Shown here piece after piece: positions 13,583-44,017 of a stretch of 44,017 nt of DNA. Source of the stretch: Macrostomum lignano (taxonomy: Eukaryota); contig NIVC01000810.1 in NCBI GenBank assembly GCA_002269645.1, positions 174,485 to 218,501 of the forward strand. Reading direction: 5' to 3'. Below the pieces are notes generated by a model. It saw only the letters and a list, made by a program, of their open reading frames with translations, did no database searches and was not told the origin of the DNA. Each line of letters begins with the position of its first letter. Positions within the stretch are counted from its first letter, which is position 1. A program made the position numbers and the translations under genes.

Positions 13583-19572
<5,990 letters not shown>

Positions 19573-19910: not shown

Positions 19911-20105
19911 GGTGAGGTGAGGTGAGGTGAGGTGAGGTGAGGTGAGGTGAGGTGAGGTGAGGTGAGGTGAGGTGAGGTGAGGTGAGGTGAGGTGAGGTGA
20001 GGTGAGGTGAGGTGAGGTGAGGTGAGGTGAGGTGAGGTGAGGTGAGTTGAGGTAAGGTGAGGTGAGCTGAGGGGAGGTGAGCTGAGTGGAGGTGGGGTGA
20101 GGTGA
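19911..20105. repeat. (GGTGA)n pentanucleotide microsatellite
   Basis: About 25 perfect units followed by degenerate ones; a short copy lies at 18494-18510. Confidence 0.97.
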
Positions 20106-21007
20106 GTTCAACATCAGATCAATATTTATTAAGCGGCTCAGCAGCTGATCCAATGTTTAATCGGGGCATGGCTACAGCTTCATAAAGGAACTGAAGTTGA
20201 TTGCAATGGAAATAACATCACTATAAGCTAGCATTCACCAGTGCTATTTAAAGCAAATTAATCGATATTGATGGCAGCTATCAACATCAAAGCCGGATAT
20301 TTGCAACCAAGGCCAATTTAAATTGCAAATTTCTCTCTCTATTCATAGATTAGATATCCAACTCAGCGCTTGAACTGGTTCAGTGTAGACCGGCTGGTGA
20401 ATCTGTGAGAAAGCCGGTCAGTTGACCACCGCAAGCGCACACATCCGCTACCAGATTGGCCACTAATTATGCACAAACAGATGGAAGCATGTGTCAGGGG
20501 AAAGCAAATTTGGTTTGAACTCTTATGGTAAACGCGCCATACCTGTTATTGTCGGGTATTTTTAGTAAATTTTGAGCATTTATATATTCTGCCTGAATAA
20601 AAATATCTCAAACGGCATCGTTAGTGCTACTATTGATAAAAATATTAAATTCTAGTTCGTAATGTTTCGACAGCAGCCAGTTTCAGTTTCAGGAATAGTT
20701 TTAATTAGCATAAAAATATCTGAATAACCAATCATAAGCTATTAGTGAAGCAAAAGTCTTAGCCGAAATAATTATAGTTATTACAAAGTTCGGAAGCTTA
20801 AAAAAGTCATTCTCTATAAAAAACAGAAAAGCACAGAGAAATCTTGAGTAAATGAGGGTCTCTCTCGGAGTCTCTCCGTTATTTTTGAAAAATCGGAACT
20901 TGAAGAAGCTGAGCTTTGATGTTGCTACAGAAAAGAGAAAAATCTACAGCACACCTGTTAGTTTCAGAAAAGTTGATCTCCCATGATCGCCTCACGATCC
21001 CCCGGCC

Positions 21008-24000
21008 CTACATATCCCATGACGTCACCAGCTCGCCGTGCTCGTCGATGTGTCCGATGATCTTCTCGTAGATCGTCTCGAGACTGTCCGACAGACGGGG
21101 GGCCGATGGGTCGGGACTGACAACCGTCGCGTACTCCATGCGGGACAGGTCCTGGGGTAAACCGGTTCAGGTAGATGAGGCTTAAATGCATATTAATTAA
21201 CTAATTATTCTCTCTTCCGTCTCTATAAGACCAGCACCAGGGGCTTTAGCACCAGGGGCTTTAGCACCAGGGGCTTTAGCACCAGGGGCTTTAGCACCAG
21301 GGGCTTTAGCACCAGGGGCTTTAGCACCAGGGGCTTTAGCACCAGGGGCTTTAGCACCAGGGGCTTTAGCACCAGGGTCTTTAGCATCAGGGGCGCCAGC
21401 ACTAGGGGCGCCAGCACCAGGGGCTTTAGCACCAGGGGCGCCAGCACCAGGGGCGCCAGCACCAGGGGCGCCAGCACTAGGGGCGCCAGCACCAAGGGCG
21501 CCAGCACCAGGGGCGCCAGCACCAGGGGCGCCAGCACCAGGGGCGCCAGCACCAAGGGGCGCCAGCACTAGGGGCGCCAGCACCAAGGGCGCCAGCACCA
21601 GGGGCGCCAGCACCAGGGGCGCCAGCACCAGGGGCGCCAACACCAGGGGCGCCAGCACCAGGGGCGCCAGCACCAGGGGCGCCAGCACCAGGGGCGCCAG
21701 CACCAGGGGCGCCAGCACCAGGGGCGCCAGCACCAAGCACGCTGACAATGTCATCGGGCGCGCCAGGCGCTGCTTTGCGCAGGTGAGGAGAGCCATCGGG
21801 CCTACTTGGGGTCTTTCTCCCAAGACGGTCAGATGGATTTACACCGGCATTGTTCGGCCCAGTATCACCTACGCGTGTGTTATCTGGTCCAGTGCGTTGG
21901 AGTTGAAGACTGTTTGGGATCGGTTGTACCAGCTGCAGGGTAACATCTGCCGAGCCATCACCGGTGCGTATCCATCCACCCCTTACGAGGGGCTCAACAC
22001 CATCCTCAGCATGCCTCCGCTGCATTTGTTCATTAGAGCTGAGGCGATGAAGGGTGCCGCGCGTCTCATCTGTGATAAATTTATTGCTAACACGCCCTCG
22101 GGCTTCATGCCTGAGAAGACTCTTTTCCCACATCTGGACTATATCCGTCGCGATCTTCAACGCATCCACCTCAATTTAGACGAGGTGGACTGCAGATCAT
22201 CCACTCTCATCCTCAGGAGGGGCTTCAAGTGTACTCTTCCACCGAGAGGTAGTCACCCGCTGGACGTGGGCATCAACCGGAGAAGCCAGGGTATTCACTG
22301 CTTCACTGACGGATCCCTGCGTGACGGTCTCGCTGGTGCAGGCATTGCCATTTTCCACAAGGGTGAAGCGATCTTCCAAGAGAGTCTTCATCTTGGTGAG
22401 AATGTCTCGGTTTTTCAATCCGAAGTTGTAGCTATCAACCAGTGCGCTGAGCATTTGCACAAAGCTGGCATCAGCAGCTTTGACATTTATTTTTACTCTG
22501 ACAGCCAGGCCGCTATTAAGGCCTTGTCTTCTATCAAGCTCTCAACCAAGTCAGTCTCAGACTGCCTCAAAAGCTTGCAGACCCTAGCGATTCTCAACAG
22601 GATCAATGTTATCTGGACACCAGGCCATAGCAACATCCTCGGCAACGAGCTTGTGGATCAGCTTGCCAAGCGGGGTTGCACCCCTGATGGAGCGCAACGC
22701 TCAGTCAAGTTACCTTCTCCGAAGTCATCAATCAACCGCGCCATTCAAGATTGGCTGAACCGCCAGCATCAGACTCACTGGGACAGCTGCTCCGAATACC
22801 GGCAAGCACGAAAGGCTATGCCTGCCATTAACCGGAAAGTATCCGAATATCTAATCTCCTTAAGTAAAACTGACCTGAGGGAGATGTGCATGGTCATTAC
22901 TGGCCATGGCTTCTTCCAGAGACATATTTCACTGCAAAGTGGCTGCTCCCCTATCTGCCCATTCTGTGATTTAGAGGAGGAAACCTCGACGCACCACGTC
23001 ACTTTCTGCCCGCACTTCAACGAGGCGCGGAGGCGTCACCTCGGTCACCCGCTAAGGCTTGACGAGCTCACCACTCCGGACCGTATCCGTGATCTACGTG
23101 CATTCGTTCGGGATTCTGGGCGGATGAAAATCGCAGACGCCACTCTCGCGAGCTCTTCTGCCGGCGAGGGGTGGGCGCAGCCCCAAGGCTAACGCCTTTC
23201 TGTTTCTGTTTAGCTTGGGGTTGCGATGGGGGCCTCGCGGCCTGTTCGCGGCGCTCTGCCCCCCGTCGGTAGTAAGTAAGTAAGTAGGGGCGCCAGCACC
23301 AGGGGCGCCAGCACCAGGGGCGCCAGCACCAGGGGCGCCAGCACATCAAAAATGAGATACCAATTATGGAATGCAACCAAGCTACCCACCCTGTACAGGT
23401 AGTGCGATTTCCTGTAGTCCTGCTCCAGCTCGAGGGCCGACGGTCCCGCACCGATGCGCTTTCGGTAAAAGTAAATCGATAACGCAACTACTAGAAGCAG
23501 CAACGACAGCAGGCCGAACAGAACTGGTAGAAAACTGCTTTCTTCGTCCCGCTTCCCTTTGTTGCATCTTGTGACTCCTGAAATTCGAATAATTGCTACT
23601 CGAATGTCCATATCTGTTGATCTGCATATGTCAACAGGGAGACATAAGCGGCCTTACCTGCTGATTGCAAAGATGAACAGCTCCGCTTTATCGTGAAATT
23701 AATGATTTTCCTCTGTGTAATCAAACAAGAAATTGTTATATTTTCTTGATAGCTGTCAGTCTTGCCAGTCAGAACTGCTGCATCTTCCAACGAGTCATTA
23801 AAAAACGGCTGAAGATGGTTTTTTAAAATTGGTTTCATGCAGTCATGCCATTTTTTATTGAGGCTGGCACGCTTTAAGCGACAATGTCGCACAACCGGCG
23901 AGAGGCATTGCTGCCCATTCCGCCGACTCCCCTGAGCAGGCACACAAGCGCGCGGATACGTACGCAGTCATACGCACAGGCACACACTCACACAGGAGTG

Positions 24001-27000
24001 TACAGCGGCCCTAACTTTATTTATCGTTAGGCATGCACACTTCACTGTGCCTTGGGGGTTGGCCCTCAAGGCCGTTAATTGCACGAGCAGAGCCAAGCCG
24101 AGATTTCAATTTCGCCGCACTGAACCTGTGGGCTACGCCCCCCCCCCCTGGGAAATGTCATGCTTCAGAGCTACTCACAGAGCCAGTAGAGTTCCCATCG
24201 ATGAAGCACTGAGCGCTGGCTCTGGGATTTCCTCTCCATTCCTTCGACAGGCTAAGCGTGGTGTTAAAATGGGTTCCGTTGAAGAAAGAGATCGACAAAC
24301 TTGCTTCTGCTTGGTCTGAGGGGAATTTTTAAAAAAATTCTTGGCGATTATCAAGTCTCCATTACAGTCACGAAAAACTATTCACAAAGGTAGTTGAGTA
24401 ATTAGTCAATATAGGAATGCCTTCATTGGATTCTTATGGGGAACGAATAATAAGCAGAAGCGCTGCCCGACCGCCCGAGGACTCGGCTGCGTCAGTCGGT
24501 GATCGAGACCGTCATGCTGTACAACGCCTAGACGTGAACCCTGACCGCTACGCTGAAGGGGCAGCTGGACTCGGCGCACTCGGGGCTGCTCTGAGTGGTC
24601 TTACGAGCCGACGAGAGCTTCGGGCTCAACTGCAACGCCCGTCCACCTTCCTTGAGCCGGCGGCGACGTCAACTAGCGAACCAAGTGATTCGGGTCGAGA
24701 GCTACTGCCCCCCAGCCTCTACAGAGACGCCCTCATGACTTGACTCTTCTAGGTTTCGTCTTTTGTTGTTCTTACTTGAAGTATTATACGAACTAGTAAC
24801 CCTTTGGTGCTAAAGCTCACGCTGTTAAATCTAATATGCAATGAGTTATCACAATTAACAACTTTAACCAAAGTTTTGCCAACTCACAATAGACAGTAAT
24901 GTTCTGTGTGAATCTGCCATCCACATCTTCGAGGTCATGCTGAGAGACTCTGCACTCCAATGAGCCTCCGTTCATCTGCCTTGTTGAACTCCAGCTAAAT
25001 TCAGATTCCATCAGCGTCTCAACTCCTGGAGTTTGAGTCACGGGGGTGTTCTGAGCCCTGGTCATGCTGGTGCTGAGACCATCGGCTCTTTGCAGCCAGC
25101 ACCGGTGACTGGGCTCAGGGTTGCCACCGACTGACCGAACTGAGACTGACACGGGCTCGCCCTCCTTCATCACCAGAGGCTGAGTTGCATTCCATGAGTT
25201 CCTTGACGCATCTGTTGTACAAATCAATTCATTTGAATAGCGTTCCATTCACTCAGAATCATAACAATGGGAAACAAAAACGACTCAAACTCACAGAGCA
25301 CATCGAGTTTGTCACTGACTACTGACTTGCGAAACAAAACTGTGCTGCTTTCAGTCATCTGCAAAAGATCACACTGGATTTGCTGTCCGTTGTCTCCGGC
25401 CAGAGCGTTCAGTGTCCATAGAGATGTAGCATTTGATGCAGATTGAGGCTGGAATCAGTTTAGGGAACGAGGTTATTGTCATGTATCACCTGTCAGTCAA
25501 ATACTACAAACTACAGCCTTACCATAATCTGTGTGAGATTCCTTCCGGAAGCAGAGCAGCTGTGCAGAGCCGGAGGATTGCCGCGGTCAGAGGCCAGCAG
25601 CAGAATTTGAGCTGGGGAATTCGCTCGGATCTGCGGTGCGGCCAGCCTGATGGAGGCGCTCCGCACGGGGTCTGCGGTGTTTGCATATGCAGTTGGCTAT
25701 TGTGTACAAATTGTGTACCAACTGAAAAAACTATATATGTGAAGCCACATGCTGTTGCAAATAATGATAGTCAGCTATCCATCACGTGACTCACACAGAG
25801 CAGCTGGCAGCGGATGCCGGGCCCAGGTCTCGATCAGTCCCGACTGATTCACCAGACACGCAACGGATGCGCTGCTGCCCCACCGTCTGCTCACAGTTAC
25901 TGAGAATGTGCTGCTCGAGTTTGTGCTCTGGAATGAGTTCATTTCACACCATGCTTTCTGCAGGTCTCGGCGGCAAAACTGTAAAATACTCACCGAGACA
26001 ATCCGCAGTGTCGAGTTCGGGACTCCCTCCGACAGCAGAAAGCAGCTATGACTGGTTGTCACCCAGTTTCCTTGAGATGAGTCAGCTGTCAGATTGACAG
26101 TCGCTCCATCTATCCAGCTGGAGTCTGGGGGAAGCAGAAACCGAGTGCTGCAGGCCTCTGAAACGGTTCGAGTCGGGAGTGCTAAGGCGATTGCTGCCGT
26201 GAGAACCAGCAGTGAGAACTCACCGAGTAGCTTAGGCAGGCGCAGTGTTACTGGTGCTATATTTGTGCTGTCACTGCATTTTATGCTGCAAGATATGTTT
26301 CCATTCTTATATTCTGATTGCAGTTTCACCTCAAAGTACGACTTTGCACCGATATTTCTAGTACTGAACTTTTGTGTTTCACTCTAAAAGCATGCATGAA
26401 AGTTCACAAAAAATGTGAATGCGCACGATATTGAGTCGAAAATACAGCGCTTTTATTCTTACACTGAAAGTCGAATTCAGTCTTTTTATTGAGATCGTTT
26501 TCGACTTTTTTCGGCTTGATGTACTGCCATAATTTCTCGGATCATATGTAAGATAGCAGTCGTACTCTGTTGCAGAAACCAAGCCATCCGTGCTGAGAGA
26601 GAACACTGCTGTCCTGTTCACCACCCAGTGCTTGGTGATGCTCAGATCAAGACTTGGAGCTCCTGAAATTCAAGCTGAAAGCTTAGAAAAAGAAAAAAGA
26701 AATGGTGACTTCTATTTCACGTTAAAGTTGGTAAATGACCAACTGGAAATGAGAAGGATTGATGATACATTTCTACATAATCGGCAGTTCATTTATTGAA
26801 AGATACAGCGCGAGAAAAACATGAGATACTGAAACTTATTTACTCAATCACAGCTTCACCGAAATTGCCATTAAGTAATGTTACAATGGCGAAGCAGGTG
26901 TTTGGAAACCGTCTCGAAACTCTTTCAAGCTCACCCTTTGCTACACATTGGTTTATCATCAGTTCTTGCGAAGTCTGCGCGAGACTTCCGTCAGTGCAGC

Positions 27001-29580
27001 TCTGTCGGCACTGCAGATTCGCTTCGTGAAATTCCGGTGTCACGTTAATCTCTTTCAAAATGAGGAAACTGGAAGTTTTTGCCTTCTGCAAAATTTATCG
27101 GATTCAAGTTGTAAGTTAGTAGCTAATGAATTTCAGCATTTTGTTTCCAGTTCAGCTCTCACACTGCTCAGAGCCATGACGTCACCGCTTCGCATCCGGA
27201 TGCTGCAGTTGACTGCACCAGGTGCGGATGATGAGCTGCACGGAAGCCATGCCTTAACCATCAGTTTATCATTTTCCTTCAGTTTCAACAATTCTCTCTC
27301 AAAACATCCAACGTTGCTTTGTTTGCAAAAGTACGCTCCGTAGCAGTGAGCATTTTTGGCGTCTCGATCAGAATCATTGCTTCTTTTAATAGCCAAGCTA
27401 TTTTCCTCGATCTGCAGCAGCCGGAAGTTCATGTACTTGTCAGCATTGTTGTGCACAAACTTCCTCAGCAGCACAAACTGCGGCAACTGTAATGAGATGT
27501 CAATGAGGACATTAAAACATGCACGGGAGCTCCAATATTGAAGGACTCAGCAATTGCATACCTTTGAATAGTCTCGAACTGAGCAGGTAACTTTATATGC
27601 TAATTCTGAGTTAGTTGAGTTCTCGGTGATTCCACACAGGTGAAATTCGGTCAGGCTGTGGTTGAAACCCGCTATGCAACCTGGCGGATTCTCAGTCAGA
27701 CCAGCTGGCCTCTCGTGGCTGAGCAGCACCTCGATGCCCAGGGCTCTAACTCTTTCTGGGACTGGGGCTGGTTTGATAATGTGCAAGGAAAACTGTGAAC
27801 TGATTATTATCAAACATTCTTATGCACAAAAACACAGTGTGCACAAACACACGGTGTGCACAAACACACGGTGTGCACAAACACACGGTGTGCACAAACA
27901 CACGGTGTGCACAAACACGCGGTGTGCAAAAACACACGGTGTGCACAAACACACGGTGTGCACAAACACACGGTGTGCTCAAACACACGGTGTGCACAAA
28001 CACACAGTATGCACAAACACACGGTATGCACAAACACACAGTATGCACAAACACACAGTATGCACAAACACACGGTGTGCACAAACACACGGTGTGCACA
28101 AACACACGGTGTGCACAAACACACAGTATGCACAAACACACGGTGTGCACAAACACACGGTGTGCACAAACACACGGTGTGCACAAACACACGGTGTGCA
28201 CAAACACACGGTGTGCACAAACACACGGTGTGCACAAACACACGGTGTGCACAAACACACGGTGTGCACAAACACACAGTATGCACAAACACACGGTGTG
28301 CACAAACACGCGGTGTACACAAACACACGGTGTGCACAAACACACGGTGTACACAAATACACGGTGTGCACAAACACACAGTATGCACAAACACACGGTA
28401 CGCACAAACTTTGGCAGTACTCTTTAGCGAACTTTAGCTAACACAAACCGATGCAAAATATCCTAATACTTACAATCAAGTCTCCCATAGACAGTGACCG
28501 AGAGCACTGAGACACACCGGTTGAGCTTCAGCAACAGCCACTGGTAGCCTGAGGGGTCCGCGGTGTTGCTGGAGTGGAAATAGTCCCATTGCGATGGTCT
28601 GGCAGATGAATTACGGAAGCAGCCGTTGCTGTTGTACCATGACGACTGCCAGGCATCATCGATTTCGGATTTGGTGATGTTGAAGCCGAGGCCTTCAGTG
28701 TTAATAAAGTTTTAGCGACTTGAAAACTGTCTGACCAAAGCTTTTTGTAAAGTGGCGTAGTATCTTCAGATTTTTATCAATAATTCAATGCCCATCGTTT
28801 GCTTTCCAAAGAAGCGCTTATTATTTAACTCTCAAGCATTTATACATCTAGATTACTACTTAAACGGGTAATCTATCTTAATCTGAGCGAGCATCATTGT
28901 AGTTACTAGCACTATTTCATTGAACTTCAAGTTGGTGCTCTTTTGGAGTCTGTAAAAGACGCAATGTTCCAGTAGCCGAACACTCAATCATGATAGTCTT
29001 AATTGTATGAGACTTGTTTTTGTAATTTAGAAGATTACTAGATTTCTAATGACATTTGACATTCACATTTTTTTAACATGCATGATATGATAATTTACAG
29101 TTTCTTTTGGTTTATGTAGCTTGTAGCTTGAACTTCCACCACTCTAACACTCTTGACATGAGTATGAAGTTCCATGTGAGTTAAAGTTGCAATAAGAACT
29201 ACCACTGATAAAGTGACGCTTTATCAAGGTGTAACATTCACATCCTATTAATTCTATAAAGCCATTGTAAGATAAGACCGTTCTCAACTCCCATCTCCGC
29301 AGTGTAAAAGTTCCGACATAAGATCGAACTTACGCTACGAAAGCTTTATACGCTCGTAGTACGACCCCCTACTCTTAGCGTAGCAAGTTTCAACAGTGGG
29401 TTTGAAACTGTGCCGGTAATTGAACTGTCAAATAAATGGTTATTACATTATTTCCTATCAAGATGCCATTGCGCAATAATTATGATATAATTATACAATA
29501 TCAGAAATAAAACAATTTTCCTCACAGTCTCTGAAGCAATAGACAGCAAAGCACAAAAACAGCTTCAATTGCAGATCCAT
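21008..29580 (-). CDS. Type I membrane receptor, ~983 aa: signal peptide, F-type-lectin-like domain, six atypical Ig-like domains, TM, ITIM-like/ITSM cytoplasmic tail
   Basis: complement join 29580-29526, 28692-28474, 27761-27562, 27486-27163, 27085-26860, 26662-26463, 26383-26224, 26181-25994, 25927-25795, 25671-25523, 25448-25295, 25211-24888, 24315-24179, 23808-23658, 23577-23390, 21151-21008 = 2952 nt. All introns are GT-AG and phases chain without a stop. Signal [21 protein letters not shown]; lectin motifs [25 protein letters not shown]-x3-R; Ig-like GNP..C and NG...C motifs, with LDVLY and ITVYY G-strands; [25 protein letters not shown] then RKR. The exon 3 acceptor could shift by 6 nt either way. 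Confidence 0.75.
21231..21735. repeat. 15-bp minisatellite, left part (AGCACCAGGGGCTTT block, then AGCACCAGGGGCGCC block)
   Basis: Tandem units in the last intron of the receptor; the array resumes at 23286-23344 after the LINE. Confidence 0.97.
21736..23286 (+). mobile_element. 5'-truncated non-LTR retrotransposon (R1/LOA-like) encoding RT C-terminus, RNase H and CCHC knuckle; (TAAG)3 tail
   Basis: Uninterrupted frame 21738-23192: [34 protein letters not shown]; RNase H motifs [36 protein letters not shown]; C-x2-C-x8-H-x4-C (CPFC...HHVTFC). 3' UTR ends in TAAG repeats at 23273-23284. Clade assignment is from motif memory. Confidence 0.9.
23286..23344. repeat. 15-bp minisatellite, right remnant (4 units)
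   Basis: AGGGGCGCCAGCACC x4 directly after the LINE tail. Confidence 0.95.
23864..24112 (-). repeat. Dispersed ~250-bp repeat, copy B (uninterrupted), in receptor intron 13
   Basis: Approximate reverse complement of 8611-8631 plus 8847-9076. Confidence 0.85.
24457..24760 (+). mobile_element. Decayed RTE-like LINE 3' fragment, receptor intron 12
   Basis: One frame reads [36 protein letters not shown]...[12 protein letters not shown], matching the RT C-terminal 'S.VETVLLY..E.WTLT..L...LD....LLR' pattern with in-frame stops. Confidence 0.65.
27827..28409. repeat. 17-bp satellite (CACAAACACACGGTGTG), ~34 copies, receptor intron 2
   Basis: Tandem units; reverse complement of the array starting at 34561. 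Confidence 0.98.
28411..28820 (-). repeat. Left arm of an inverted segmental duplication (partner 34150-34559)
   Basis: Line-by-line comparison gives ~410 bp of unique sequence with one mismatch; paired coordinates sum to 62970. Confidence 0.95.
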
Positions 29581-30377
29581 GTAGACGCTGAGGGTGTCTA
29601 CAGTTTTGCAAAATACGATTGCGGAACAGAAGAGGCCCTCTGTCTGCTGCGATTATCAAGATTAAGCTTCGAAGGAAGCTTAGATGGTACAATATTGTGA
29701 AATTTAACCATCAATACGGCTCAACGAGTGAAATAGCTACACTCGTAATATGGGTAGAAATTACCCTACATCCAACCGTCCAATTCACCTTTAGCCAATA
29801 GGCAATGGACCTGGGGCTTTATGTACGTGTAAATATAATTATTGTCCATTTAGCCACGGACTGCTATATGCTAAAACCTGGGCTAAAACCTTCTTTTGAG
29901 GCTTACAGATTTAGGTCCAGCATTTGCCACAGTGGTAGATATTCCAACACGGCATTGATAAGGCAAAAAAATCGTTTGTAAAGAATTACTACCTAAATTA
30001 CTTAATATAATGATGCATATTTAGGACACTCGTTATTAATATTTTATCAATGGCTTGGTCGTAGTTATATAAATTCAACAACAGAATAAAAAAATTGATG
30101 TAATTTACTTAAAATACGAAATTATTGAACGCAAAAATTTCATTTTTTTCTAGATTTCACGACTTTTCCTGAGATTTATAGACACGAGGACATCAAACGC
30201 ACACGTAGCTACGAGTGTCTGCTTTCCTTAGTTTGATTCGTATGACCGAATCACTACAAGCTCGTATGACCATCACGAGTTATACGAGCAAATTCTCGCA
30301 AAGCTCCGTGAAATTTTTTTCAACTAAACTTGTTAAATTTTCCGAAAATCGAAAAATTTAACTAGCTACATAGCCTT

Positions 30378-32498
30378 CACTCAGCAACACTGAAAAGTTT
30401 CCACCCTCGCGCCAGCCGTGTTTATTTAGAGTTTCAAAACTAGTTTTTGTCGCCAGACTTGTGCCATAGACGATTGATGATTTCGTCAACACGCACTTCG
30501 GCCATAGACAAAAACTTGGGTCATAGACGCCAGACAGGACAGGTCGAAGGAAACAGTCACATGGAGCAGACCCATGCTGCGATCCCGTAAGATGCGCAAA
30601 CGGCCACGCCTGACCCCAACCCATGTGGCCAGCCGGGAACAATGGATAAATAATCAACACTATTGACCGCGACCGCTGATTCTTTGCATTGTTTTTCTGT
30701 TTGACGATCCTAAAAACAATGCATTGTTTGTAGCAATGGATTGTTCTGCATTAAAAATGGGAATAATGATGTCAAATTGCTAAACAATGGGAAATGCAAA
30801 GGGCAGCAGCAGTGGCGGCGAGTGATTTTTATTGATTGTAGAGAGTTATTAGACAATACCGAAATGCTCTACTTAAAGTAATATTCTAAGGAAGTCAATT
30901 TCTTTCAAAATGAGTCATATCTATTTTAGGAATCACGCGCAAACAGAATGATTTAGAAACCTACATTGTTTGATCAAGGAACCGGATTCCAACAGCTGTA
31001 TTTGCTTAACCCCATATATGGTAATGCTCAAACATGCATGACAGCTTAATCAAACATTTTTGACCTAAGTAAATACCCAATCCCAAACCGGTTTTTCTCC
31101 AAAATTTTGCTATAAATATAAGTGAAATTTGAGTCAAAAATTCAGACTCAGAGCGGTCTCTAAAAAGACTCTGAAGAAACAAGAAGACCAATCTCTGAGG
31201 GACCACACCTGTCCAATTGGTAAGCGTTTACCCGATTTAGTTATTTGTTACTAGCGCTAATAAGTTGGTTAATTGAGTTATACGAGAGCAGTTCATTGTC
31301 GATACATTAGAGAAAGGCCTCCTTGTTTCCTAGGATATTCCTAGAGGATTTATTGATTTAATTGAGTTATCCGTTACGTTTCGGACGTAACGAAGAAGCC
31401 GCCCTTCAGGAGGACCTATCACAGAAAATTAGAGAATTCAATTGTTCATTAGGGCGCACGTTCTATTGTTAATTCCGAGCTCGAGGACCGTTAAGAAGTT
31501 CTGATTCGCTCTCGTTTGGTCGACCCACAGATAAAAGTCAAGGACTCAAGAAGAATACTCCAAATCGGCCGTCACTACTGCTCAGCCAAGTTAGACAGAG
31601 TCACACACACCGCAAGAACCAGAAGTCTACCAACCACAAGAGGATCCGCCGCAGTAAGTCATTTGAACTGGTAAATACCTAGGCACTTGTTCCCCAGTGT
31701 CTAGAAGTGGGAGTTTTTGAGTGACTGATCACCACTCTTAAACTCTTCATGATGAGAGCCGCTTTCGATTGTTCCGTGCCGACGGCCGCATTCGCGTGTG
31801 GCGCCAGCCGCACCAGGAGATGCTGCCGCAGCACGTGCAAAACTCTGAGAGCCAGTCAGCTTCTATTCACGTGTGGGCAGGCATCACAATGCACGCGAAG
31901 ACGGAGCTCGTGTTCCTGGATGCGATTGTGACTGCCGAGTCGTACGCCAACCTTCTACAGACGCGCCTGCTGCCTTTCATTGATGCTTCATGTGGTGGCG
32001 TGGGGAACAGCGTCCTCCAAGACGACAACGCCCCACCGCATCGCGCAGCCGCTGTGGCGCATCTGAAGGAGCTGCTGCACCTGCGATCCTTGCGCTGGCC
32101 ATCCCGATCACCGGACATGAATCCCAGGGAGCACGTTTGGGATTACCTGAAGCGCTCGATTCGGCGCGACAATCCGCCGCAAAACGTTGCCCAACTGCGC
32201 GAATCACTGTCTACTGCATGGCAACAACTCTGCGACGCCTGTTTCTGGGGATGCCCCGGAGAGTGAGCGCTCTGCTGCATGCACGTGGCTGCTATACGCG
32301 TTACTGACCCTGTTCTGGGCAAGTTGTCACCCATGCTCGCGTACTTTGTTTCTGTGCTGTTCCTTTGCTTCGTTCGAATCCGGATTATATATTTGTCTAT
32401 GGCTCAAACCATGAATATCTGCACCCACCAAAACGTTGACCCTTCGCAACGTTGACCCTTCGCACGCTAGGGTGGAAACTTTTCAATGTTGCTGAGTG
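30378..32498 (+). mobile_element. Decayed Tc1-family DNA transposon (DD34E) with 30-bp TIRs and an internal ~1.1-kb insertion
   Basis: TIRs CACTCAGCAACACTGAAAAGTTTCCACCCT (30378-30407) and AGGGTGGAAACTTTTCAATGTTGCTGAGTG (32469-32498), one mismatch; TA follows the right TIR. Linker fragment MLRSRKMRKRPRLTPTHVASREQW at 30574-30645; catalytic region from 31751. Confidence 0.9.
31751..32307 (+). pseudogene. Tc1 transposase DDE domain, frameshifted
   Basis: DESRF...VWAGI...QDDNAPPH...WPSRSPDMNPREHVW, with 34 residues between the second D and E. Frameshift near 32230 before MPRRVSALLHARGCYTRY*. Confidence 0.9.
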
Positions 32499-33768
32499 TA
32501 ATTTAGCCATATCACAAATGCAGCAAGAATGTTCTCAGGGTGCGCCGCTGCTGCAGTTCGAGCTTCGACTCAGCGCGGATGCTGCGACCTGCTGGCTGAA
32601 GTGAGTCATTGACGGCGCAGCTGCAGGCTTGCAAGGCAGGTGCAGAGAGCTGCATCAGTGAAATTGATCATCACCAACCTTAGAGACTGTACAGGCAGGC
32701 CAGTGTTGCGTGCTCTGTGCCGACTTACTGTTGAGCGAGCCTCGTGAGGTAAAGTCCAGGTCTCAGAGTCCAGATTCCAGGTGTCAGAGTCCAGATCTCG
32801 GCAGTCACAGCGGCCTAGAGCACTTTGGAGGTCAGATGGGAGCTCTGATTGCTCAGAACGAAAGGCAGCTCAGGCAAGCTCTTGGAAATGCCGCGGATCC
32901 CTCATCACGCTTTGCCACCTGCCTTGATGCTGTCCACAATCGCACAAGATTGTACGTGTACAGTCTAATCAAGCAGAGCGCTCGGCAAGAAGTGAATGAG
33001 CTATAGAGGTAAAATCCTTGCATATGTGCCTTCCATGCAGGTCCTATTGTTTTGGCTGCTAGCCAAATGGCTGAAATCAACTCAGGTGTTGAGAGAAGAA
33101 AGGATCGAGATGGCTTTACCTTGTGAGCTAGCAATCAATATATATTGTTTAACTGACAGATGCCCATCCAACATCAGTGCGATGTATGCGTACATTACAT
33201 AATAGTGTAGAGCAGGCACATTCATAACACATATCCCCTGCCTTTCGAGCTCGTACCCTACGTCGGGCCATGAGAAGGCAAAGGGGGAACTGCTTCGATT
33301 TGGAGTGCTTTGAGTGTTAATTAGACGCTTATTAATTACACTATTTAATTAATTGTTGCTTAACCTTGTAAGGAGTAGTTAATTTTTCCTGGAAGCTTGG
33401 TGTTCAAGCTTGGAAATTTTTAAGTTCAATACTAAGTTCAATACTACTACCTTTGAAGTAGCAATATGTGGGATTATAAAACTTTCGGTGCGACCGCGGT
33501 ATATTTAATACGGTAATCAAGGTTCCCATTTAGTCGTTGCAAGGCTAAGTGAGTTATCAGAGCCGCAGCAGCTATTAAATAAGACGGCATGCAGCTTTGC
33601 ACCAGGAAAAAAGTAGAAAGCGTTTATCACCATTGATATTTCCCTAATTGAGAACTTCAGCTGACTTAAACAAAATTTTTCACCAAGTTCTTTCGATTTA
33701 AGACTGAATATATTTTCAGACAAGAATTCGGTCCCATCAAAAAACGCTTCGTCAATTTTTTTGAGTAA

Positions 33769-34496
33769 ATGAGTCTCCAGAAAAAACAGATTCTGTACGT
33801 CAGCTGCAGTCTCTGCTGCTTTTACGTTTGTAAGTACCGTTTTTTAGCTTTTATCTTGCACAACTTCGTTTAAAAATTATTGTAGGCTACTTGACTTTAA
33901 TATAATGAGCAATAACATTAGCGTCTTGAAGGCCAAACTGTGACTCAAGGGGACTGGATATGAGTTAGTAGCACAGAAATCGAATTCAATACCTTTGAAC
34001 TGTCACTGTTGCTTAAAAGGTTGCTTAAAAGATTAGAGTAGCCAAAGTTTAGCGTGATCAGGCGGGTTGTACATATTTTTCATCCTTGTACATTGGGCGA
34101 GTGATCCACTAGGTCATTTGATGTCGTTGTATGCGAGCATTGTATACCTTAAGCGCTTCTTTGGAAAGCAAACGATGGGCATTGAATTATTGATAAAAAT
34201 CTGAAGATACTACGCCACTTTACAAAAAGCTTTGGTCAGACAGTTTTCAAGTCGCTAAAACTTTATTAACACTGAAGGCCTCGGCTTCAACATCACCAAA
34301 TCCGAAATCGATGATGCCTGGCAGTCGTCATGGTACAACAGCAACGGCTGCTTCCGTAATTCATCTGCCAGACCATCGCAATGGGACTATTTCCACTCCA
34401 GCAACACCGCGGACCCCTCAGGCTACCAGTGGCTGTTGCTGAAGCTCAACCGGTGTGTCTCAGTGCTCTCGGTCACTGTCTATGGGAGACTTGATT
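33769..34496 (+). CDS. 5' part (exons 1-2) of a second, divergently oriented copy of the lectin-Ig receptor; remainder would lie beyond the satellite, outside the window
   Basis: join(33769..33829,34278..34496). Exon 1 is MSLQKKQILYVSCSLCCFYV plus a phase-1 gtaagt donor, giving ...CFYVCLGFNITK. Exon 2 is identical to 28692-28474. Confidence 0.6.
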
Positions 34497-34559
34497 GTAA
34501 GTATTAGGATATTTTGCATCGGTTTGTGTTAGCTAAAGTTCGCTAAAGAGTACTGCTAA
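34150..34559 (+). repeat. Right arm of the inverted segmental duplication
   Basis: Reverse complement of 28411-28820 with one mismatch; the order of variant units also matches for the first several satellite units. Confidence 0.95.
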
Positions 34560-34560
34560 A

Positions 34561-37500
34561 GTTTGTGCGTACCGTGTGTTTGTGCATACTGTGTGTTTGT
34601 GCACACCGTGTGTTTGTGTACACCGTGTGTTTGTGCACACCGTGTGTTTGTGTACACCGCGTGTTTGTGCACACCGTGTGTTTGTGCATACTGTGTGTTT
34701 GTGCACACCGTGTGTTTGTGCACACCGTGTGTTTGTACACACCGTGTGTTTGTGCATACCGTGTGTTTGTGCACACCGTGTGTTTGTGCACACCGTGTGT
34801 TTGTGCACACCGTGTGTTTGTGCACACCGCGTGTTTGTGCACACCGCGTGTTTGTGCACACCGCGTGTTTGTGCACACCGTGTGTTTGTGCACACCGCGT
34901 GTTTGTGCACACCGTGTGTTTGTGCATACCGTGTGTTTGTGCACACCGTGTGTTTGTGCACACCGCGTGTTTGTGCACACCGTGTGTTTGTGCACACCGT
35001 GTGTTTGTGCACACCGCGTGTTTGTGCACACCGTGTGTTTGTGCATACCGTGTGTTTTTGCACACCGTGTGTTTGTGCACACCGCGTGTTTGTGCACACC
35101 GTGTGTTTGTGCACACCGTGTTTTTGTGCACACCGTGTGTTTGTGCATACCGTGTGTTTGTGCACACCGTGTGTTTGAGCACACCGTGTGTTTGTGCATA
35201 CCGTGTGTTTGTGCACACCGCGTGTTTGTGCACACCGTGTGTTTGTGCATACCGTGTGTTTGTGCACACCGTGTATTTGTGCACACCGTGTGTTTGTGCA
35301 TACCGTGTGTTTGTGCACACCGTGTGTTTGTGCACACCATGTGTTTGTGCACACCGTGTGTTTGTGCATACCGTGTGTTTGTGCATACCGTGTGTTTGTG
35401 CACACCGCGTGTTTGTGCACACCGTGTGTTTGTGCATACCGTGTGTTTGTGCATACCGTTTGTTTGTGCACACCGCGTGTTTGTGCATACCGTGTGTTTG
35501 TGCAAACCGTGTGTTTGTGCACACCGTGTGTTTGTGCATACCGTGTGTTTGTGCATACCGTGTGTTTGTGCACACCGTGTGTTTGTGCATACCGTGTGTT
35601 TGTGCACACCGTGTGTTTGTGCACACCGTGTGTTTGTGCACACCGCGTGTTTGTGCATACCGTGTGTTTGTGCATACCGTGTGTTTGTGCACACCGTGTG
35701 TTTGTGCACACCGTGTGTTTGTGCATACCGTGTGTTTGTACATACCGTGTGTTTGTGCACACCGTGTGTTTGTGCATACCGTGTGTTTGTGCACACCGTG
35801 TGTTTGTGCATACCGTGTGTTTGTGCACACCGTGTGTTTGTGCACACCGTGTGTTTGTGCACACCGTGTGTTTGTGCACACCGTGTGTTTGTGCACACCG
35901 TGTGTTTGTACATACCGTGTGTTTGTGCACACCGTGTGTTTGTGCACACCGCGTGTTTGTGCACACCGTGTGTTTGTGCATACCGTGTGTTTGTGCACAC
36001 CGCGTGTTTGTGCACACCGTGTGTTTGTGCACACCGTGTGTTTGAGCACACCGTGTGTTTGTGCATACCGTGTGTTTGTGCAAACCGTGTGTTTGAGCAC
36101 ACCGTGTGTTTGTGCATACCGTGTGTTTGTGCACACCGTGTGTTTTTGCATACCGTGTGTTTGTGCATACCGTGCGTTTGTACACACCGTGTGTTTGTGC
36201 ATACCGTTTGTTTGTGCACACCGTGTGTTTGTGCACACCGCGTGTTTGTGCACACAGTGTGTTTGTGCACACCATGTGTTTGTCCATACCGTGTGTTTGT
36301 GCACACCGTGTGTTTGTGCACACCGTGTGTTTGTGCATACCGTGTGTTTGTGCACACCGCGTGTTTGTGCATACCGCGTGTTTGTGCACACCGTGTGTTT
36401 GTGCACACCGTGTGTTTGAGCACACCGTGTGTTTGTACATACCGTGTGTTTGTGCACACGTGTGTTTGTGCACACCGCGTGTTTGTGCACACCGTGTGTT
36501 TGTGCATACCGTGTGTTTGTGCACACCGCGTGTTTGTGCACACCGTGTGTTTGAGCACACCGTGTGTTTGAGCACACCGTGTGTTTGTGCATACCGTGTG
36601 TTTGTGCAAACCGTGTGTTTGAGCACACTGTGTGTTTGTGCATACCGTGTGTTTGTGCACACCGTGTGTTTTGCATACCGTGTGTTTGTGCATACCGTGC
36701 GTTTGTACACACCGTGTGTTTGTGCATACCGTGTGTTTGTGCACACCGTGTGTTTGTGCACACCGCGTGTTTGTGCACACCGTGTGTTTGTGCACACCAT
36801 GTGTTTGTCCATACCGTGTGTTTGTGCACACCGTGTGTTTGTGCACACCGCGTGTTTGTGCATACCGTTTGTTTGTGCACACCGTGTGTTTGTGCACACC
36901 GTGTGTTTGAGCACACCGTGTGTTTGTGCACACCGTTTGTTTGTGCATACCGTGTGTTTGTGCATACCGTGTGTTTGTGCACACCGTGTGTTTGTGCATA
37001 CCGTGTGTTTGTGCATACCGTGTGTTTGTGCATACCGTGTCTTTGTGCATACCGTTTGTTTGTGCATACCGTGTGTTTGTACACACCGTGTGTTTGTGCA
37101 TACCGTTTGTTTGTGCACACCGTGTGTTTGTGCACACCGCGTGTTTGTGCACACCGTGTGTTTGTGCACACCGTGTGTTTGTGCATACCGTGTGTTTGTG
37201 CACACCGTGTGTTTGAGCACACCGTGTGTTCGTGCATACCGTGTGTTTGTGCACACCGTGTGTTTGTGCACACCGCGTGTTTCTGCACACCGTGTGTTTG
37301 TACACACCATGTGTTTGTGCATACCGTTTGTTTGTACACACCGTGTGTTTGTGCATACCGTTTGTTTGTGCACACCGTGTGTTTGTGCACAACGCGTGTT
37401 TGTGCACACCGTGTGTTTGTGCACACCATGTGTTTGTGCATACCGTTTGTTTGTGCACACCGTGTGTTTGTGCACACCGTGTGTTTGTGCATACCGTGTA

Positions 37501-40500
37501 TTTGTGCACACCGCGTGTTTGTGCATACCGCGTGTTTGTGCACACCGCGTGTTTGTGCATACCGTGTGTTTGTGCATACCGCGTGTTTGTGCACACCGTG
37601 TGTTTGTGCATACCGTGTGTTTGTGCACACCGTGTGTTTGTGCACACCATGTGTTTGTGCACACCGTGTGTTTGTGCATACCGTGTGTTTGTGCATACCG
37701 TGTGTTTGTGCATACCGTGTGTTTGTGCATACCGTGTGTTTGAGCACACCGTGTGTTTGTGCACACCGTGTGTTTGTGCATACCGTGTGTTTGTGCACAC
37801 CGCGTGTTTGTGCACACTGTGTGTTTTTGCATACCGTGTGTTTGTGCACACCGCGTGTTTGTGCACACCGTGTGTTTGAGCACACCGTGTGTTTGTGCAT
37901 ACCGTGTGTTTGTGCACACCGTGTGTTTGTGCACACCGTGTGTTTGTGCATACCGTGTGTTTGTGCATACCGTGTGTTTGTGCCTACCGTGTATTTGTGC
38001 AAACCGTGTGTTTGAGCACACCGTGTGTTTGTGCATACCGTGTGTTTGTGCATACCGTGTGTTTGTGCATACCGTGTGTTTGTGCACACCGTGTGTTTGT
38101 GCACACCGTGTGTTTGTGCATACCGTGTGTTTGTGCATACCGTGTGTTTGTGCACACCGCGTGTTTGTGCACACCGTGTGTTTGTGCATACCGTGTGTTT
38201 GTGCATACCGTTTGTTTGTGCACACCGCGTGTTTGTGCATACCGTGTGTTTGTGCAAACCGTGTGTTTGTGCACACCGTGTGTTTGTGCATACCGTGTGT
38301 TTGTGCATACCGTGTTTTTGTGCACACCGTGTGTTTGTGCATACCGTGTGTTTGTGCACACCGTGTGTTTGTGCACACCGTGTGTTTGTGCATACCGTGT
38401 GTTTGTGCACACCGTGTGTTTGTGCATACCGTGTGTTTGTGCATACCGTGTGTTTGTGCACACCGTGTGTTTGTGCACACCGTGTGTTTGTGCATACCGT
38501 GTTTTTGTGCATACCGTGTGTTCGTGCATACCGTTTGTTTGTGCATACCGTGCGTTTGTACACACCGTGTGTTTGTGCATACCGTTTGTTTGTGCACACC
38601 GTGTGTTTGTGCACACCGCGTGTTTGTGCACACCGTGTGTTTGTGCACACCATGTGTTTGTGCACACCGCGTGTTTGTGCACACCGTGTGTTTGTGCACA
38701 CCATGTGTTTGTCCATACCGTGTGTTTGTGCACACCGTGTGTTTGAGCACACCGTGTGTTTGTGCATACCGTTTGTTTGTGCAAACCGTGTGTTTGAGCA
38801 CACCGTGTGTTCGTGCATACCGTGTGTTTGTGCACACCGTGTGTTTGTGCACACCGCGTGTTTGTGCACACCGTGTGTTTGTACACACCATGTGTTTGTG
38901 CATACCGTTTGTTTGTGCACACCGTGTGTTTGTGCACACCGTGTGTTTGTGCATACCGTTTGTTTGTGCACACCGTGTGTTTGTGCACACCGTGTGTTTG
39001 AGCACACCGTGTGTTTGTGCACACCGTGTGTTTGAGCACACCGTGTGTTTGTGCACACCGCGTTTTTGTGCACACCGTGTGTTTGTGCACACCGTGTGTT
39101 TGAGCACACCGTGTGTTTGTGCATACCGTGTGTTTGTGCAAACCGTGTGTTTGAGCACACTGTGTGTTTGTGCATACCGTGTGTTTGTGCACACCGTGTG
39201 TTTGTGCATACCGTGTGTTTGTGCATACCGTGTGTTTGTGCACACCGTGTGTTTGTGCACACCGTGTGTTTGTGCATACCGTGTTTTTGTGCATACCGTG
39301 TGTTTGTGCACACCGTGTGTTTGTACATACCGTGTGTTTGTGCACACCGTGTGTTTGTGCACACCGCGTGTTTGTGCACACCGTGTGTTTGTGCATACCG
39401 TGTGTTTGTGCACACCGCGTGTTTGTGCACACCGTGTGTTTGTGCACACCGTGTGTTTGAGCACACCGTGTGTTTGTGCATACCGTGTATTTGTGCAAAC
39501 CGTGTGTTTGAGCACACCGTGTGTTTGTGCATACCGTGTGTTTGTGCATACCGTGTGTTTGTGCACACCGTGTGTTTGTCCACACCGTGTGTTTGTGCAC
39601 ACCGTGTGTTTGTGCATACCGTGTGTTTGTGCATACCGTGTGTTTGTGCACACCGCGTGTTTGTGCACACCGTGTGTTTGTGCATACCGTGTGTTTGTGC
39701 ATACCGTTGTTTGTGCACACCGTGTGTTGTGCATACCGTGTGTTTGTGCAACCGTGTGTTTGTGCACACCGTGTGTTTTGCATACCGTGTGTTTGTGCAT
39801 ACCGTGTTTTGTGCACACCGTGTGTTTGTGCATACCGTGTGTTTGTGCACACCGTGTGTTTGTGCACACCGTGTGTTTGTGCATACCGTGTGTTTGTGCA
39901 CACCGTGTGTTTGTGCATACCGTGTGTTTGTGCATACCGTGTGTTTGTGCACACCGTGTGTTTGTGCACACCGTGTGTTTGTGCATACCGTGTTTTGTGC
40001 ATACCGTGTGTTTGTGCATACCGTTTGTTTGTGCATACCGTGCGTTTGTACACACCGTGTGTTTGTGCATACCGTTCGTTTGTGCACACCGTGTGTTTGT
40101 GCACACCGCGTGTTTGTGCACACCGTGTGTTTGTGCACACCATGTGTTTGTGCACACCGCGTGTTTGTGCACACCGTGTGTTTGTGCACACCGTGTGTTT
40201 GTGCACACCGCGTGTTTGTGCACACCGTGTGTTTGAGCACACCGTGTGTTCGTGCATACCGTGTGTTTGTGCACACCGTGTGTTTGTGCACACCGCGTGT
40301 TTGTGCACACCGTGTGTTTGTGCACACCATGTGTTTGTGCATACCGTTGTTTGTGCACACCGTGTGTTTGTGCACACCGTGTGTTTGTGCATACCGTTGT
40401 TTGTGCACACCGTGTGTTTGTGCACACCGTGTGTTTGTGCACACCGTGTGTTTGTGCACACCGTGTGTTTGTGCACACCGTGTGTTTGTGCACACCGTGT

Positions 40501-43500: not shown

Positions 43501-44017
43501 GTTTGTACACACCGTGTGTTTGTGCATACCGTTGTTTGTGCACACCGTGTGTTTGTGCACACCGCGTGTTTGTGCACACCACACCGTGTGTGTTGTGCAC
43601 ACGTGTGTTTGTGCACACCGGTGTTTGTGCACACCGTGTGTTTGTGCACACCTGTGTTTGTCATACCGTGTGTTTGTGCACACCGTGTGTTTGTGCACAC
43701 CGTGTGTTTGTGCATACCGTGTGTTTGTGCAACCGTGTGTTTGTGCACACCGTGTGTTTGTGCATACCGTGTGTTTGTGCACACGCGTGTGTTTGTGCAC
43801 ACCGCGTGTTTGTGCACACCGTGTGTTTGTCACACCGTGTGTTTGTGCATACCGTGTGTTTGTGCACACCGTGTGTTTGTGCACACCGTGTGTTTGTGCA
43901 TACCGTGTGTTTGTGCACACCGTGTGTTTGTGCACACCGTGTGTTTGTGCACACCGTGTGTTTGTGCACACCGTTGTTTGTGCATACCGTGTGTTTGTGC
44001 ATACCGTGTGTTTGTGC
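34561..44017. repeat. 17-bp satellite (CACACCGTGTGTTTGTG), >9.4 kb, ~550 copies, runs off the window
   Basis: Tandem units with CATACC, GAGCAC, GTACAC and CGCGTG variants; unit-shortening indels become frequent after about 39700. Confidence 0.99.

Follow-up and report, generated by a model that had tools for sequence, protein, structure and literature searches.

Minisatellites in humans mutate in a polar, conversion-like manner at one end, between alleles of one locus, and inverted duplications can arise through FoSTeS/MMBIR-type events, in which replication template switching or break-induced copying is closed by end-joining. Snail FREPs diversify by conversion, and copy-over between neighbouring paralogs is an already known kind of event. 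In primates, SIGLEC11 and SIGLEC16 lie head-to-head ~9 kb apart with documented opposite signalling tails, and the region of similarity between them includes their first eight exons as well as sequence upstream, with a (GAAT)n repeat at one of its boundaries (PMC5701461). The FREPs are a lectin-plus-IgSF immune-type family of secreted proteins in which IgSF is N-terminal and a fibrinogen domain C-terminal (PMC7588048). In this study, we analysed a locus of the flatworm Macrostomum lignano in which an exon of a lectin-like receptor gene is found twice, in inverted orientation, next to a minisatellite. The window, that is, the whole stretch analysed, is 44,017 nt long and corresponds to positions 174,485-218,501 (forward strand) of contig NIVC01000810.1 in assembly GCA_002269645.1.

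When 28411-28820 was compared without gaps to the reverse complement of 34150-34559, a single mismatch appeared (28413/34557), and it lies outside exon 2; the 219-nt exon itself (28474-28692 and 34278-34496) is identical at 219/219 positions. Past 28820/34150 the match is lost at once, with 12 mismatches in the next 20 positions, and sensitive blastn detected no residual inverted similarity in the 5.3-kb spacer apart from transposon terminal repeats. The inner limit of the tract is 128 bp upstream of exon 2, in intron 1. A sequence-only reading of this DNA had already described both the near-perfect inverted copies and their abrupt end, and our results bear it out on these two points; it understated the extent of the repeat, as near-identity continues for ~270 nt further into a minisatellite. 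Because both copies enter the same 17-bp minisatellite, the arms are longer than the first 410 nt: a repeat search returned arms of 1000 nt at 97% identity (27821-28820 and 34150-35149), and the mismatch list delimits a near-identical tract of 680 nt with 4 mismatches at about 28141-28820 and 34150-34829. Each copy holds exon 2 together with 128 bp of intron 1 on its upstream side and, downstream, 64 bp of intron 2 (28410-28473 in the left copy, minus strand; 34497-34560 in the right copy, plus strand) that lead into about 16 units of the satellite, which in the right copy are the first of its array.

The left copy belongs to receptor gene A (23390-29580, minus strand), for which we obtained a model of 15 exons and 883 aa up to a short tail, open at its 3' end. 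Its exons lie at 29526-29580, 28474-28692, 27562-27767, 27163-27486, 26935-27085, 26463-26662, 26224-26383, 25994-26157, 25795-25957, 25523-25671, 25295-25448, 24888-25211, 24179-24315, 23658-23712, and 23390-23577; all 14 introns are bounded by GT...AG, and the frame is open through all exons. In the predicted product, a signal peptide is followed by an F-type-lectin-like domain, by Ig-like domains, and then by a single transmembrane helix and a short tail. Exon 1 (29526-29580) is a 55-nt leader exon of phase 1 with the donor GTGAGG and a hydrophobic core score of 2.57, and exon 2 encodes the N-terminal half of the F-type-lectin-like domain.

Gene A is homologous exon by exon to the M. lignano proteins P0001-P0012 and is a member of a small receptor family seen in M. 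lignano alone. By the plan of the family, the proteins start with a signal peptide and an F-type-lectin-like domain, and Ig-like domains and a single transmembrane helix follow; the leader is encoded by an exon of its own, and intron 1 spans 0.45-0.85 kb (loci L001 and L002). Identity among members is mosaic from exon to exon: gene A matches P0001 at 37% in exon 7, 91% in exon 8, 100% in exon 9, 94% in exon 10, and 38% in exon 11, and it matches P0002 at 43-59% in exons 2-5 and 87.5% in exon 12. Thus, segment exchange recurs in this family. A profile built from eight N-terminal domains of the family matched the F-type lectins FBP32 (3CQO, E=2e-7, both of its domains) and eel agglutinin (1K12, E=8.4e-4). 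The same two structures were the best PDB matches (3CQO, E=1.2e-4; 1K12, probability 1.00), followed by other galactose-binding-domain-like folds, in a Foldseek search with the low-confidence AlphaFold model of the paralog P0012 (mean pLDDT 50.7, domain core 55-80). The fucose-binding motif of F-type lectin domains (FTLD) is HX24RXDX4(R/K) with contiguous Cys-Cys (PMC5712786). Gene A has H-X30-R-L-D-X5-R and no Cys-Cys pair, and in the HMM alignment the residue opposite His52 of the eel lectin is not a His, with the two Arg positions conserved across the family. Since the motif departs from the FTLD consensus, sugar binding is only putative.

At the gathering threshold, Pfam gave no match for the lectin-like domain of gene A in the F5_F8_type_C clan, where P0010 and P0024 reached only sub-threshold scores (15.5-16.5 bits vs cut-offs of ~28). 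For C2-set_2, with a cut-off of 21 bits, gene A scored 19.4 with the exon-12 ORF alone and 16.1 with the whole model, and P0001 scored 21.4. In UniProt, the paralogs are named 'Ig-like domain-containing'. The locus also draws attention to this family as a lineage-restricted, unannotated group of F-type-lectin-like plus Ig-like membrane proteins.

On the plus strand, the right copy of exon 2 is preceded by a putative leader exon of a second gene, gene B (33769-33829, 61 nt, MSLQKKQILYVSCSLCCFYV), located 448 bp upstream of exon 2. The positions and the shared phase 1 of this leader and that of gene A, as given in the sequence-only reading, stood up to analysis. The gene B leader is the sole candidate in the 1 kb upstream of the plus-strand exon 2; it combines a perfect GTAAGT donor and the right phase with a hydrophobic core behind a positively charged N-terminus, and its junction with exon 2 (T+GC) encodes Cys, as in gene A and P0002. 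These features have to be weighed against the explanation that gene A was duplicated once and recently as an inverted segment lacking its 5' end, which would start 128 bp ahead of exon 2, cross the satellite, and possibly extend past it, leaving a dead plus-strand copy with a fortuitous ORF as its leader and a satellite that expanded later. The copying of non-coding flanks and of the start of the satellite together with the exon is consistent with such an event, and so is the non-homologous inner breakpoint, which a simple inverted duplication would leave. Moreover, the spacer contains no family exons other than the two leaders, gene B is visible as two exons, no transcript or protein with the exon 2 of either gene was found in the searched databases, and tandem repeats make up 15% of the M. 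lignano genome (PMC5730564), for which a fragment or a mis-join would be routine. However, a leader as good in its donor, phase, signal-peptide profile, and junction Cys is rare by chance (3 of 2000 simulated sequences and none of 108 real 1-kb windows), and the length of gene B intron 1 is typical of the family.

The plus-strand leader is also nearer to the gene A leader than are shuffled or random ATG-started sequences. The two leaders had been said to share only M-x-L-Q-x-K, which turned out to be too little: they are identical at 34 of 55 nt (62% DNA), with p=0.006-0.007 by codon shuffling and p=0.022 by amino acid shuffling. Among the ~830 ATG-started 55-mers of the window, none scores as high as the gene B leader except its own first 55 nt, and the 150 nt on either side of the two leaders show no similarity. 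This similarity is modest (p about 0.006-0.02), and we tested it once the earlier reading had already drawn attention to it. Taken together, the sequence features suggest that the exon at 33769-33829 is probably real rather than a chance ORF, and we consider the single inverted duplication unlikely.

Both arms run into the 17-bp minisatellite. The left array (27823-28409) comprises 34.5 units, with TGCACAAACACACGGTG as the plus-strand unit, and fills intron 2 of gene A; the right array (34561-44017) comprises 558 units and reaches the end of the window. Aligned in register, the two arrays agree at 98.5% over their first 200 nt, a value matched by none of the 544 other in-phase offsets, whereas deeper in the arrays the in-register identity is no better than at other offsets. 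The near-identity is register-specific over the first ~200-270 nt of satellite, and this part of the tract is genuinely common to both arms. In the homologous intron 2 of a distant paralog the repeat is a different one, (TCTG)n, so that the presence of the same 17-mer array in both arms marks a recent common origin of the segment. Because the contig terminates inside at least 9.4 kb of satellite, what can be seen of gene B is limited to its leader and exon 2.

A contig end of this kind raises the question of assembly, as the right arm (34150 onward) might be the stretch of gene A from intron 1 through exon 2 to intron 2, or its allele or homeolog with a longer satellite, joined in inverted orientation by a chimeric long read or a contig-end mis-join. 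The arms are effectively identical, and the consensus quality of the right array decays toward the contig end, with 39 indels in 39700-44017 vs 2 in 34561-39700 and identity to the unit down to 0.90 in the final ~450 nt. In addition, M. lignano, a hidden polyploid, carries duplicated regions in its genome, and the published assemblies are error-rich, with REAPR error-free bases of 32% for ML2 and 64% for Mlig_3_7 (PMC5730564). Nevertheless, the junction and the first 5 kb of the right array are in clean consensus, and a false join would have had to land by chance 320 bp downstream of a well-formed, in-phase, and correctly oriented leader. The arrays carry different variants once past the first ~16 units, so the right arm is more than a second reading of the left one. 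A missed-adapter or fold-back long-read artefact was rejected, as it would give a palindrome with no spacer or a very short one, and 5329 nt of unique DNA (28821-34149) separate the arms here. We therefore regard an assembly artefact as improbable.

The explanation that we put first, with about even confidence, is that the locus contains two head-to-head paralogs with old 5' ends and that a segment of ~0.65 kb was recently copied, non-reciprocally, from one into the other. The 62% DNA identity of the leaders and the unalignable non-coding DNA around them would reflect the age of the paralogs, and the copied segment would reach from a point in intron 1 128 bp ahead of exon 2, through exon 2 and the next 64 bp of intron 2, to about the 16th unit of the minisatellite. 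Of the two histories proposed earlier, namely old paralogs recently homogenised and a duplicated segment with a new leader, the first is favoured by the contrast between 62% identity in the leaders and 100% in exon 2. The segment does not look like a classical conversion tract, because at 128 bp upstream of exon 2 the similarity gives way to unrelated sequence. A two-sided homologous tract has homologous but more diverged flanks on both sides, and the mismatch count and the blastn search reveal none on the intron-1 side, while on the satellite side the array continues as homologous at background identity.

Copying from a break or a stalled fork, closed by end-joining or template switching, fits these observations better than two-sided conversion. 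In this scenario, the repeat array would have broken, or a fork would have stalled in it, and copying from the inverted neighbour ~5 kb away would have followed; one end of the tract would lie inside the minisatellite, the only long homology available, and the other would be the abrupt non-homologous junction in intron 1, sealed by either of these two routes. As a result, gene B's own exon 2 may have been replaced, or an extra copy may have been put in ahead of it. What the sequence shows is the identity tract with its limits, the gene A model, the assignment to family and domain, and the statistics in favour of the second leader; that gene B goes on past the satellite, which way the segment was transferred, and how the repair proceeded are what we infer. 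It counts against this explanation that, between old paralogs with unalignable introns, a conversion that stops within a common satellite requires both genes to have had the satellite before the event, which implies earlier rounds of exchange or a one-off insertion. As far as the copied segment can be seen here, the locus resembles FoSTeS/MMBIR-type events in that an inverted copy lies within a few kb of the sequence it came from, with a single abrupt, homology-free junction at one end and a breakage- or stalling-prone repeat array at the other. As in human minisatellite polarity, the first array units and the immediate flank would have been exchanged and the array interiors differ, but here the exchange would be between inverted paralogs on the same contig and would carry a coding exon.

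The parallel with SIGLEC11 and SIGLEC16 drawn in the sequence-only reading holds for the head-to-head arrangement, and only as an analogy of arrangement. Like those genes, the M. lignano receptors would be neighbouring head-to-head paralogs (the leaders are 4.2 kb apart) with near-identity over exon sequence of the N-terminal region, putatively glycan-binding here, and, in the visible part, diverged leaders beside an identical exon 2, and a simple repeat lies at one boundary, (GAAT)n there and the 17-bp minisatellite here. Unlike the SIGLEC tract, with its eight exons and the sequence before them, the tract here excludes the leaders and the upstream DNA, has one common exon visible, and has a non-homologous inner boundary; the binding domain is a V-set Ig domain there and an F-type-like lectin domain here. 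A paired-receptor system of that type, in which selection would keep the lectin exon identical in inhibitory and activating (or secreted or tailless) partners by repeated conversion, would agree with the orientation, the spacing of a few kb, and the position of the common exon in the lectin-like domain (PMC5701461). Tails do differ within the family, as at least one distant member, P0011, has a long tail with an ITIM-like VVYAQV and an ITSM-like TEYTEI and others have a short ...SHYLY tail; no partner gene was found upstream of the P0011-type gene in locus L002. In gene A, however, the 15-exon model shows a hydrophobic 23-residue transmembrane helix followed by RKR, with no charged residue in the helix and no ITIM in the tail, leaving the proposed pairing unsupported. 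Furthermore, one event is visible rather than repeated ones, and the non-coding flanks and the satellite were copied as faithfully as the exon, which gives no sign of selection on the coding part. Paired receptors are thus a very doubtful reading of this locus.

With respect to recent copying between old paralogs, a real gene B would mean that a lectin-domain exon had been transferred very recently from one inverted paralog to the other, in a sharply bounded tract anchored at one end in a minisatellite, in a regenerating flatworm model with transgenesis. Together with the family mosaic, it would make M. lignano a tractable system for the promotion of exon exchange and receptor diversification by repeat-rich introns. 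More broadly, intronic minisatellites might serve as recombination anchors that repeatedly move lectin and Ig exons between neighbouring and dispersed paralogs, yielding both the family mosaic and head-to-head pairs alike in their binding domain. This proposal is decidedly speculative and, on our assessment, improbable; if true, it would amount to a repeat-driven exon-shuffling route to receptor diversity. Like the FREPs, the M. lignano proteins form a lineage-restricted multigene family that combines lectin-type and Ig-like domains and shows mosaic relationships among its members, but in them the F-type-lectin-like domain is N-terminal, the Ig-like domains are C-terminal, and a transmembrane anchor is present.

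The spacer that holds both leader exons also holds, between them, a Tc1/mariner element (30378-32498, plus strand) with 34-bp terminal inverted repeats (30378-30411 and 32465-32498) that are 94% identical. Its transposase remnant (31742-32263; DDE_3, E=7e-12) is 96% identical to the intact 344-aa transposase P0034, and the truncation of the ORF identifies the element as a decayed copy. The target site is TA at the right flank and TT at the left flank.

Two copies of one exon lie head to head in this region: exon 2 of gene A, the minus-strand receptor model (28474-28692), and exon 2 of gene B, its putative plus-strand partner (34278-34496). Aligned without gaps, 28411-28820 and the reverse complement of 34150-34559 differ at a single position (28413/34557) outside the exon, so that the 219-nt exon is free of mismatches, and identity stops abruptly upstream of it, as the sequence-only reading had described; the 20 positions just past 28820/34150 contain 12 mismatches. 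The repeat is longer than had been stated there. A repeat search gave arms of 1000 nt with 97% identity (27821-28820 and 34150-35149), because both copies run on into one common 17-bp minisatellite, and the mismatch list delimits a near-identical tract of 680 nt with 4 mismatches (approximately 28141-28820 and 34150-34829). In the surroundings of exon 2, ~0.65 kb are 99.4% identical between the two genes. No residual inverted similarity was found between the halves of the spacer (28821-34149), where sensitive blastn matched transposon terminal repeats only, and no Helitron-type ends were seen by eye at the inner boundary. The best reading, to which we give about an even chance, is a head-to-head paralog pair with diverged leaders and an exon 2 freshly common to both.

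The minisatellite comprises a left array of 34.5 units (27823-28409) and a right array of 558 units (34561-44017), which extends to the window's final base. Over their initial 200 nt the arrays are 98.5% identical in register, a value not equalled at any of 544 other in-phase offsets; in-register identity is 95% over the following 200 nt and 93% over the final 189 nt, values that other offsets match. Thus, the initial part of the satellite is truly common to both arms. Nearly every intron of a distant paralog, P0011 (positions 4223-15969 of locus L001, GCA_002269645.1 NIVC01003746.1), holds a tandem array of its own, and seven are almost filled, each by a different array (periods 26, 4, 54, 4, 34, 22, and 34). 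The 17-mer of gene A intron 2 was not found in this one locus. Since the introns of the distant paralog hold differing arrays, the presence of the 17-mer array in both arms marks the common origin of the segment, and introns filled with satellite seem to be a habit of the M. lignano genome or of the receptor family. We also considered the satellite as a hairpin-prone cause of fork stalling, and rejected this since folding of the array is not above that of dinucleotide shuffles (z=-0.75).

An assembly artefact as the source of the right arm is improbable. It is true that the contig terminates inside the satellite with a consensus worsening toward the end: single-base indels number 2 in 34561-39700 (5.1 kb) and 39 in 39700-44017 (4.3 kb), which looks like the signature of thinning long-read coverage, and unit identity is 0.90 in the last ~450 nt of the right array. 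In addition, M. lignano is a hidden polyploid whose published assemblies are prone to error (PMC5730564). However, missed-adapter palindromes lack a spacer such as the 5.3 kb of unique DNA between these arms, the consensus is clean across the junction and throughout the initial 5 kb of the right array, and the array interiors differ in variant content. Furthermore, a random mis-join would have had to hit a point 320 bp past a leader that is in phase and in the correct orientation. Look-ups via P0002 (an M. lignano paralog protein), the bestrophin P0033, and two spacer ORFs found no independent contig on record across the junction.

Gene B is represented in the window by a leader and exon 2 only. 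The proposed leader MSLQKKQILYVSCSLCCFYV (33769-33829, plus strand) ends in phase 1 at a perfect GTAAGT donor, and no other ATG-to-donor candidate lies within 1 kb upstream of exon 2. Candidates as good in both donor and hydrophobic core arose in 3 of 2000 first-order Markov simulations and were absent from all 108 real 1-kb windows taken from the contig; with the donor relaxed to a 3/4 match, leader candidates appeared in 72 of 2000 simulations and 6 of 108 real windows. The acceptor context of gene B exon 2 is that of gene A, because identity spans 128 bp of intron 1. The predicted gene B junction joins TTTTACGTTT to GCCTCGGC, where the codon T+GC restores a Cys at the same place as in P0002 and in gene A, whose predicted junction joins CAGAGACT to the same exon. 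The resulting intron 1 of 448 bp is in line with the family plan, which in two genomic paralog loci consists of a separate leader exon and an intron 1 of ~0.55-0.65 kb. The leaders had been thought to share little. Instead, 34 of 55 aligned nucleotides are identical (62%), a similarity with p=0.022 in residue shuffles and p=0.006-0.007 in codon shuffles. The alignment score lies ~3 SD above the mean of the ~830 ATG-started 55-mers of the window, and, the initial 55 nt of the plus leader itself excepted, none of them reaches it. The 150-nt flanks on each side of the leaders show no similarity. Judged from these features, 33769-33829 most probably represents the diverged leader exon of a paralog rather than a chance ORF. 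A 108-codon open frame antisense to it (33520-33843, minus strand) is ordinary for the local composition (p=0.04-0.26), has no Pfam match, and was set aside.

The leaders are old (62% nucleotide identity, flanks unalignable) and the ~0.65 kb around exon 2 is young (99.4%), which favours a recent non-reciprocal transfer between pre-existing head-to-head paralogs. Alternatively, the plus copy may be a dead inverted fragment of gene A, which together with an assembly artefact is the chief rival reading. We consider this unlikely, since it needs a one-off duplication landing by chance behind a leader-like sequence, and the contrast between old leaders and young exon speaks for transfer. The earlier interpretation is partly supported, as to diverged leaders with a freshly common exon 2. 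The tract departs from the textbook form of a conversion tract, since homology is wholly absent past the intron-1 boundary; at the opposite side it stops inside the minisatellite, which offers the only long homology. In the most economical mechanism for such a transfer, a break or stalled fork in the array would have led to copying from the inverted neighbour, across exon 2 and on into intron 1, followed by sealing without homology. The outcome would be either replacement of gene B's own exon 2 or insertion of an extra copy ahead of it.

Gene A comprises 15 exons on the minus strand (29580 to 23390), with all introns GT...AG and an uninterrupted frame of 883 aa. At its C-terminal end, a hydrophobic helix of 23 residues precedes RKR and a short tail, homologous to the ...SHYLY terminus of paralog P0001; the model has no defined stop codon or 3' end. 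All homologs are Macrostomum lignano proteins, with 22 representatives among 1.84 billion clusters, and the small family is an undescribed, lineage-specific one. A search for transcript or protein support of either leader found no carrier of this exon 2 in a set of 5.8 billion proteins. Pfam searches of single-exon ORFs and the whole gene A model gave a weak, borderline C2-set Ig match only, leaving the N-terminal domain unmatched, and a 3-sequence profile against PDB sequences gave chance thioredoxin matches only. When eight N-terminal domains of the family were combined into a profile, it matched two F-type lectins of solved structure, 3CQO (E=2e-7, in both domains) and 1K12 (E=8.4e-4). An AlphaFold model of one paralog, of low confidence (domain core pLDDT 55-80), retrieved 3CQO, 1K12, and other galactose-binding-domain-like folds; a model of P0002 made without an alignment was unusable (pLDDT 30). 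Profile and fold comparison thus point to an F-type-lectin-like domain, of which exon 2 encodes the N-terminal half. The canonical fucose motif of F-type lectins is HX24RXDX4(R/K) with a Cys-Cys pair (PMC5712786); the receptor family keeps both Arg positions, but has a displaced His and no Cys-Cys pair. The label 'ligand-binding exon' is reasonable, though putative.

Gene A exons 7-12 (24888-26383) are strongly mosaic relative to P0001 and P0002, with neighbouring exons swinging from 37% to 100% identity. Against P0001, exons 7 to 11 show 37%, 91%, 100%, 94%, and 38%, respectively; against P0002, exons 2-5 show 43-59% and exon 12 shows 87.5%. These values suggest exchange at exon scale throughout the family, albeit with the caveat that the paralog proteins are automated predictions, among which chimeric models are possible. 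The anchoring of the tract in a minisatellite and this mosaic are the interesting parts; the event itself is of a known kind.

SIGLEC11 and SIGLEC16 are likewise head to head, ~9 kb apart, and their homogenised region takes in upstream sequence and the first exons, with a (GAAT)n tract at one boundary (PMC5701461). The gene A/B locus resembles them in arrangement, in closeness, and in a repeat at a boundary. Their defining functional trait is opposite signalling tails. The 3' part of gene B is off the contig, and gene A lacks both an ITIM and a charged residue in its transmembrane helix. An activating/inhibitory pairing of this type would be a speculative and unlikely reading. The long predicted cytoplasmic tail of P0011 (residues ~740-800) contains an ITIM-like VVYAQV and an ITSM-like TEYTEI, unlike the short ...SHYLY tails of other members, including gene A and P0001. 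Tails are variable across the family, with no bearing on the gene A/B pair. At the one locus inspected for head-to-head pairing as a family trait (L002), the 10 kb lying upstream of a P0011-type gene contain no partner.

Between the leader exons lies a decayed Tc1/mariner element (30378-32498) that has TIRs of 34 bp, retains a DDE_3 remnant, and is flanked by TA on the right only; without it the leader ATGs would be ~2.1 kb apart. An intact transposase, P0034, 96% identical to the remnant, exists in Logan contigs, so the element family was recently active. Directly 3' of receptor exon 15, a 663-codon plus-strand open frame (21201-23344) with an RNase H domain, a non-LTR retrotransposon remnant, lies within a 15-bp minisatellite (21231-21735, 23286-23344). 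Elsewhere in the window are a DRC1/NYD-SP28 'sperm tail' coiled-coil gene (8145-11603, minus strand) and a bestrophin gene (17115-18494, plus strand) with an exon 99% identical to M. lignano A0A1I8HS65 (UniProt). A 23-bp satellite, AGTGATGGTCAGGAGAGGTTCGG (1636-4559, 127 units), has a very strong G-over-C strand skew (~+0.65), and further simple and tandem repeats occupy 15201-16516 and 19911-20106 ((CTAT)91, a 21-bp array of 34 units, and (GGTGA)39). Tandem repeats make up about one third of the window.
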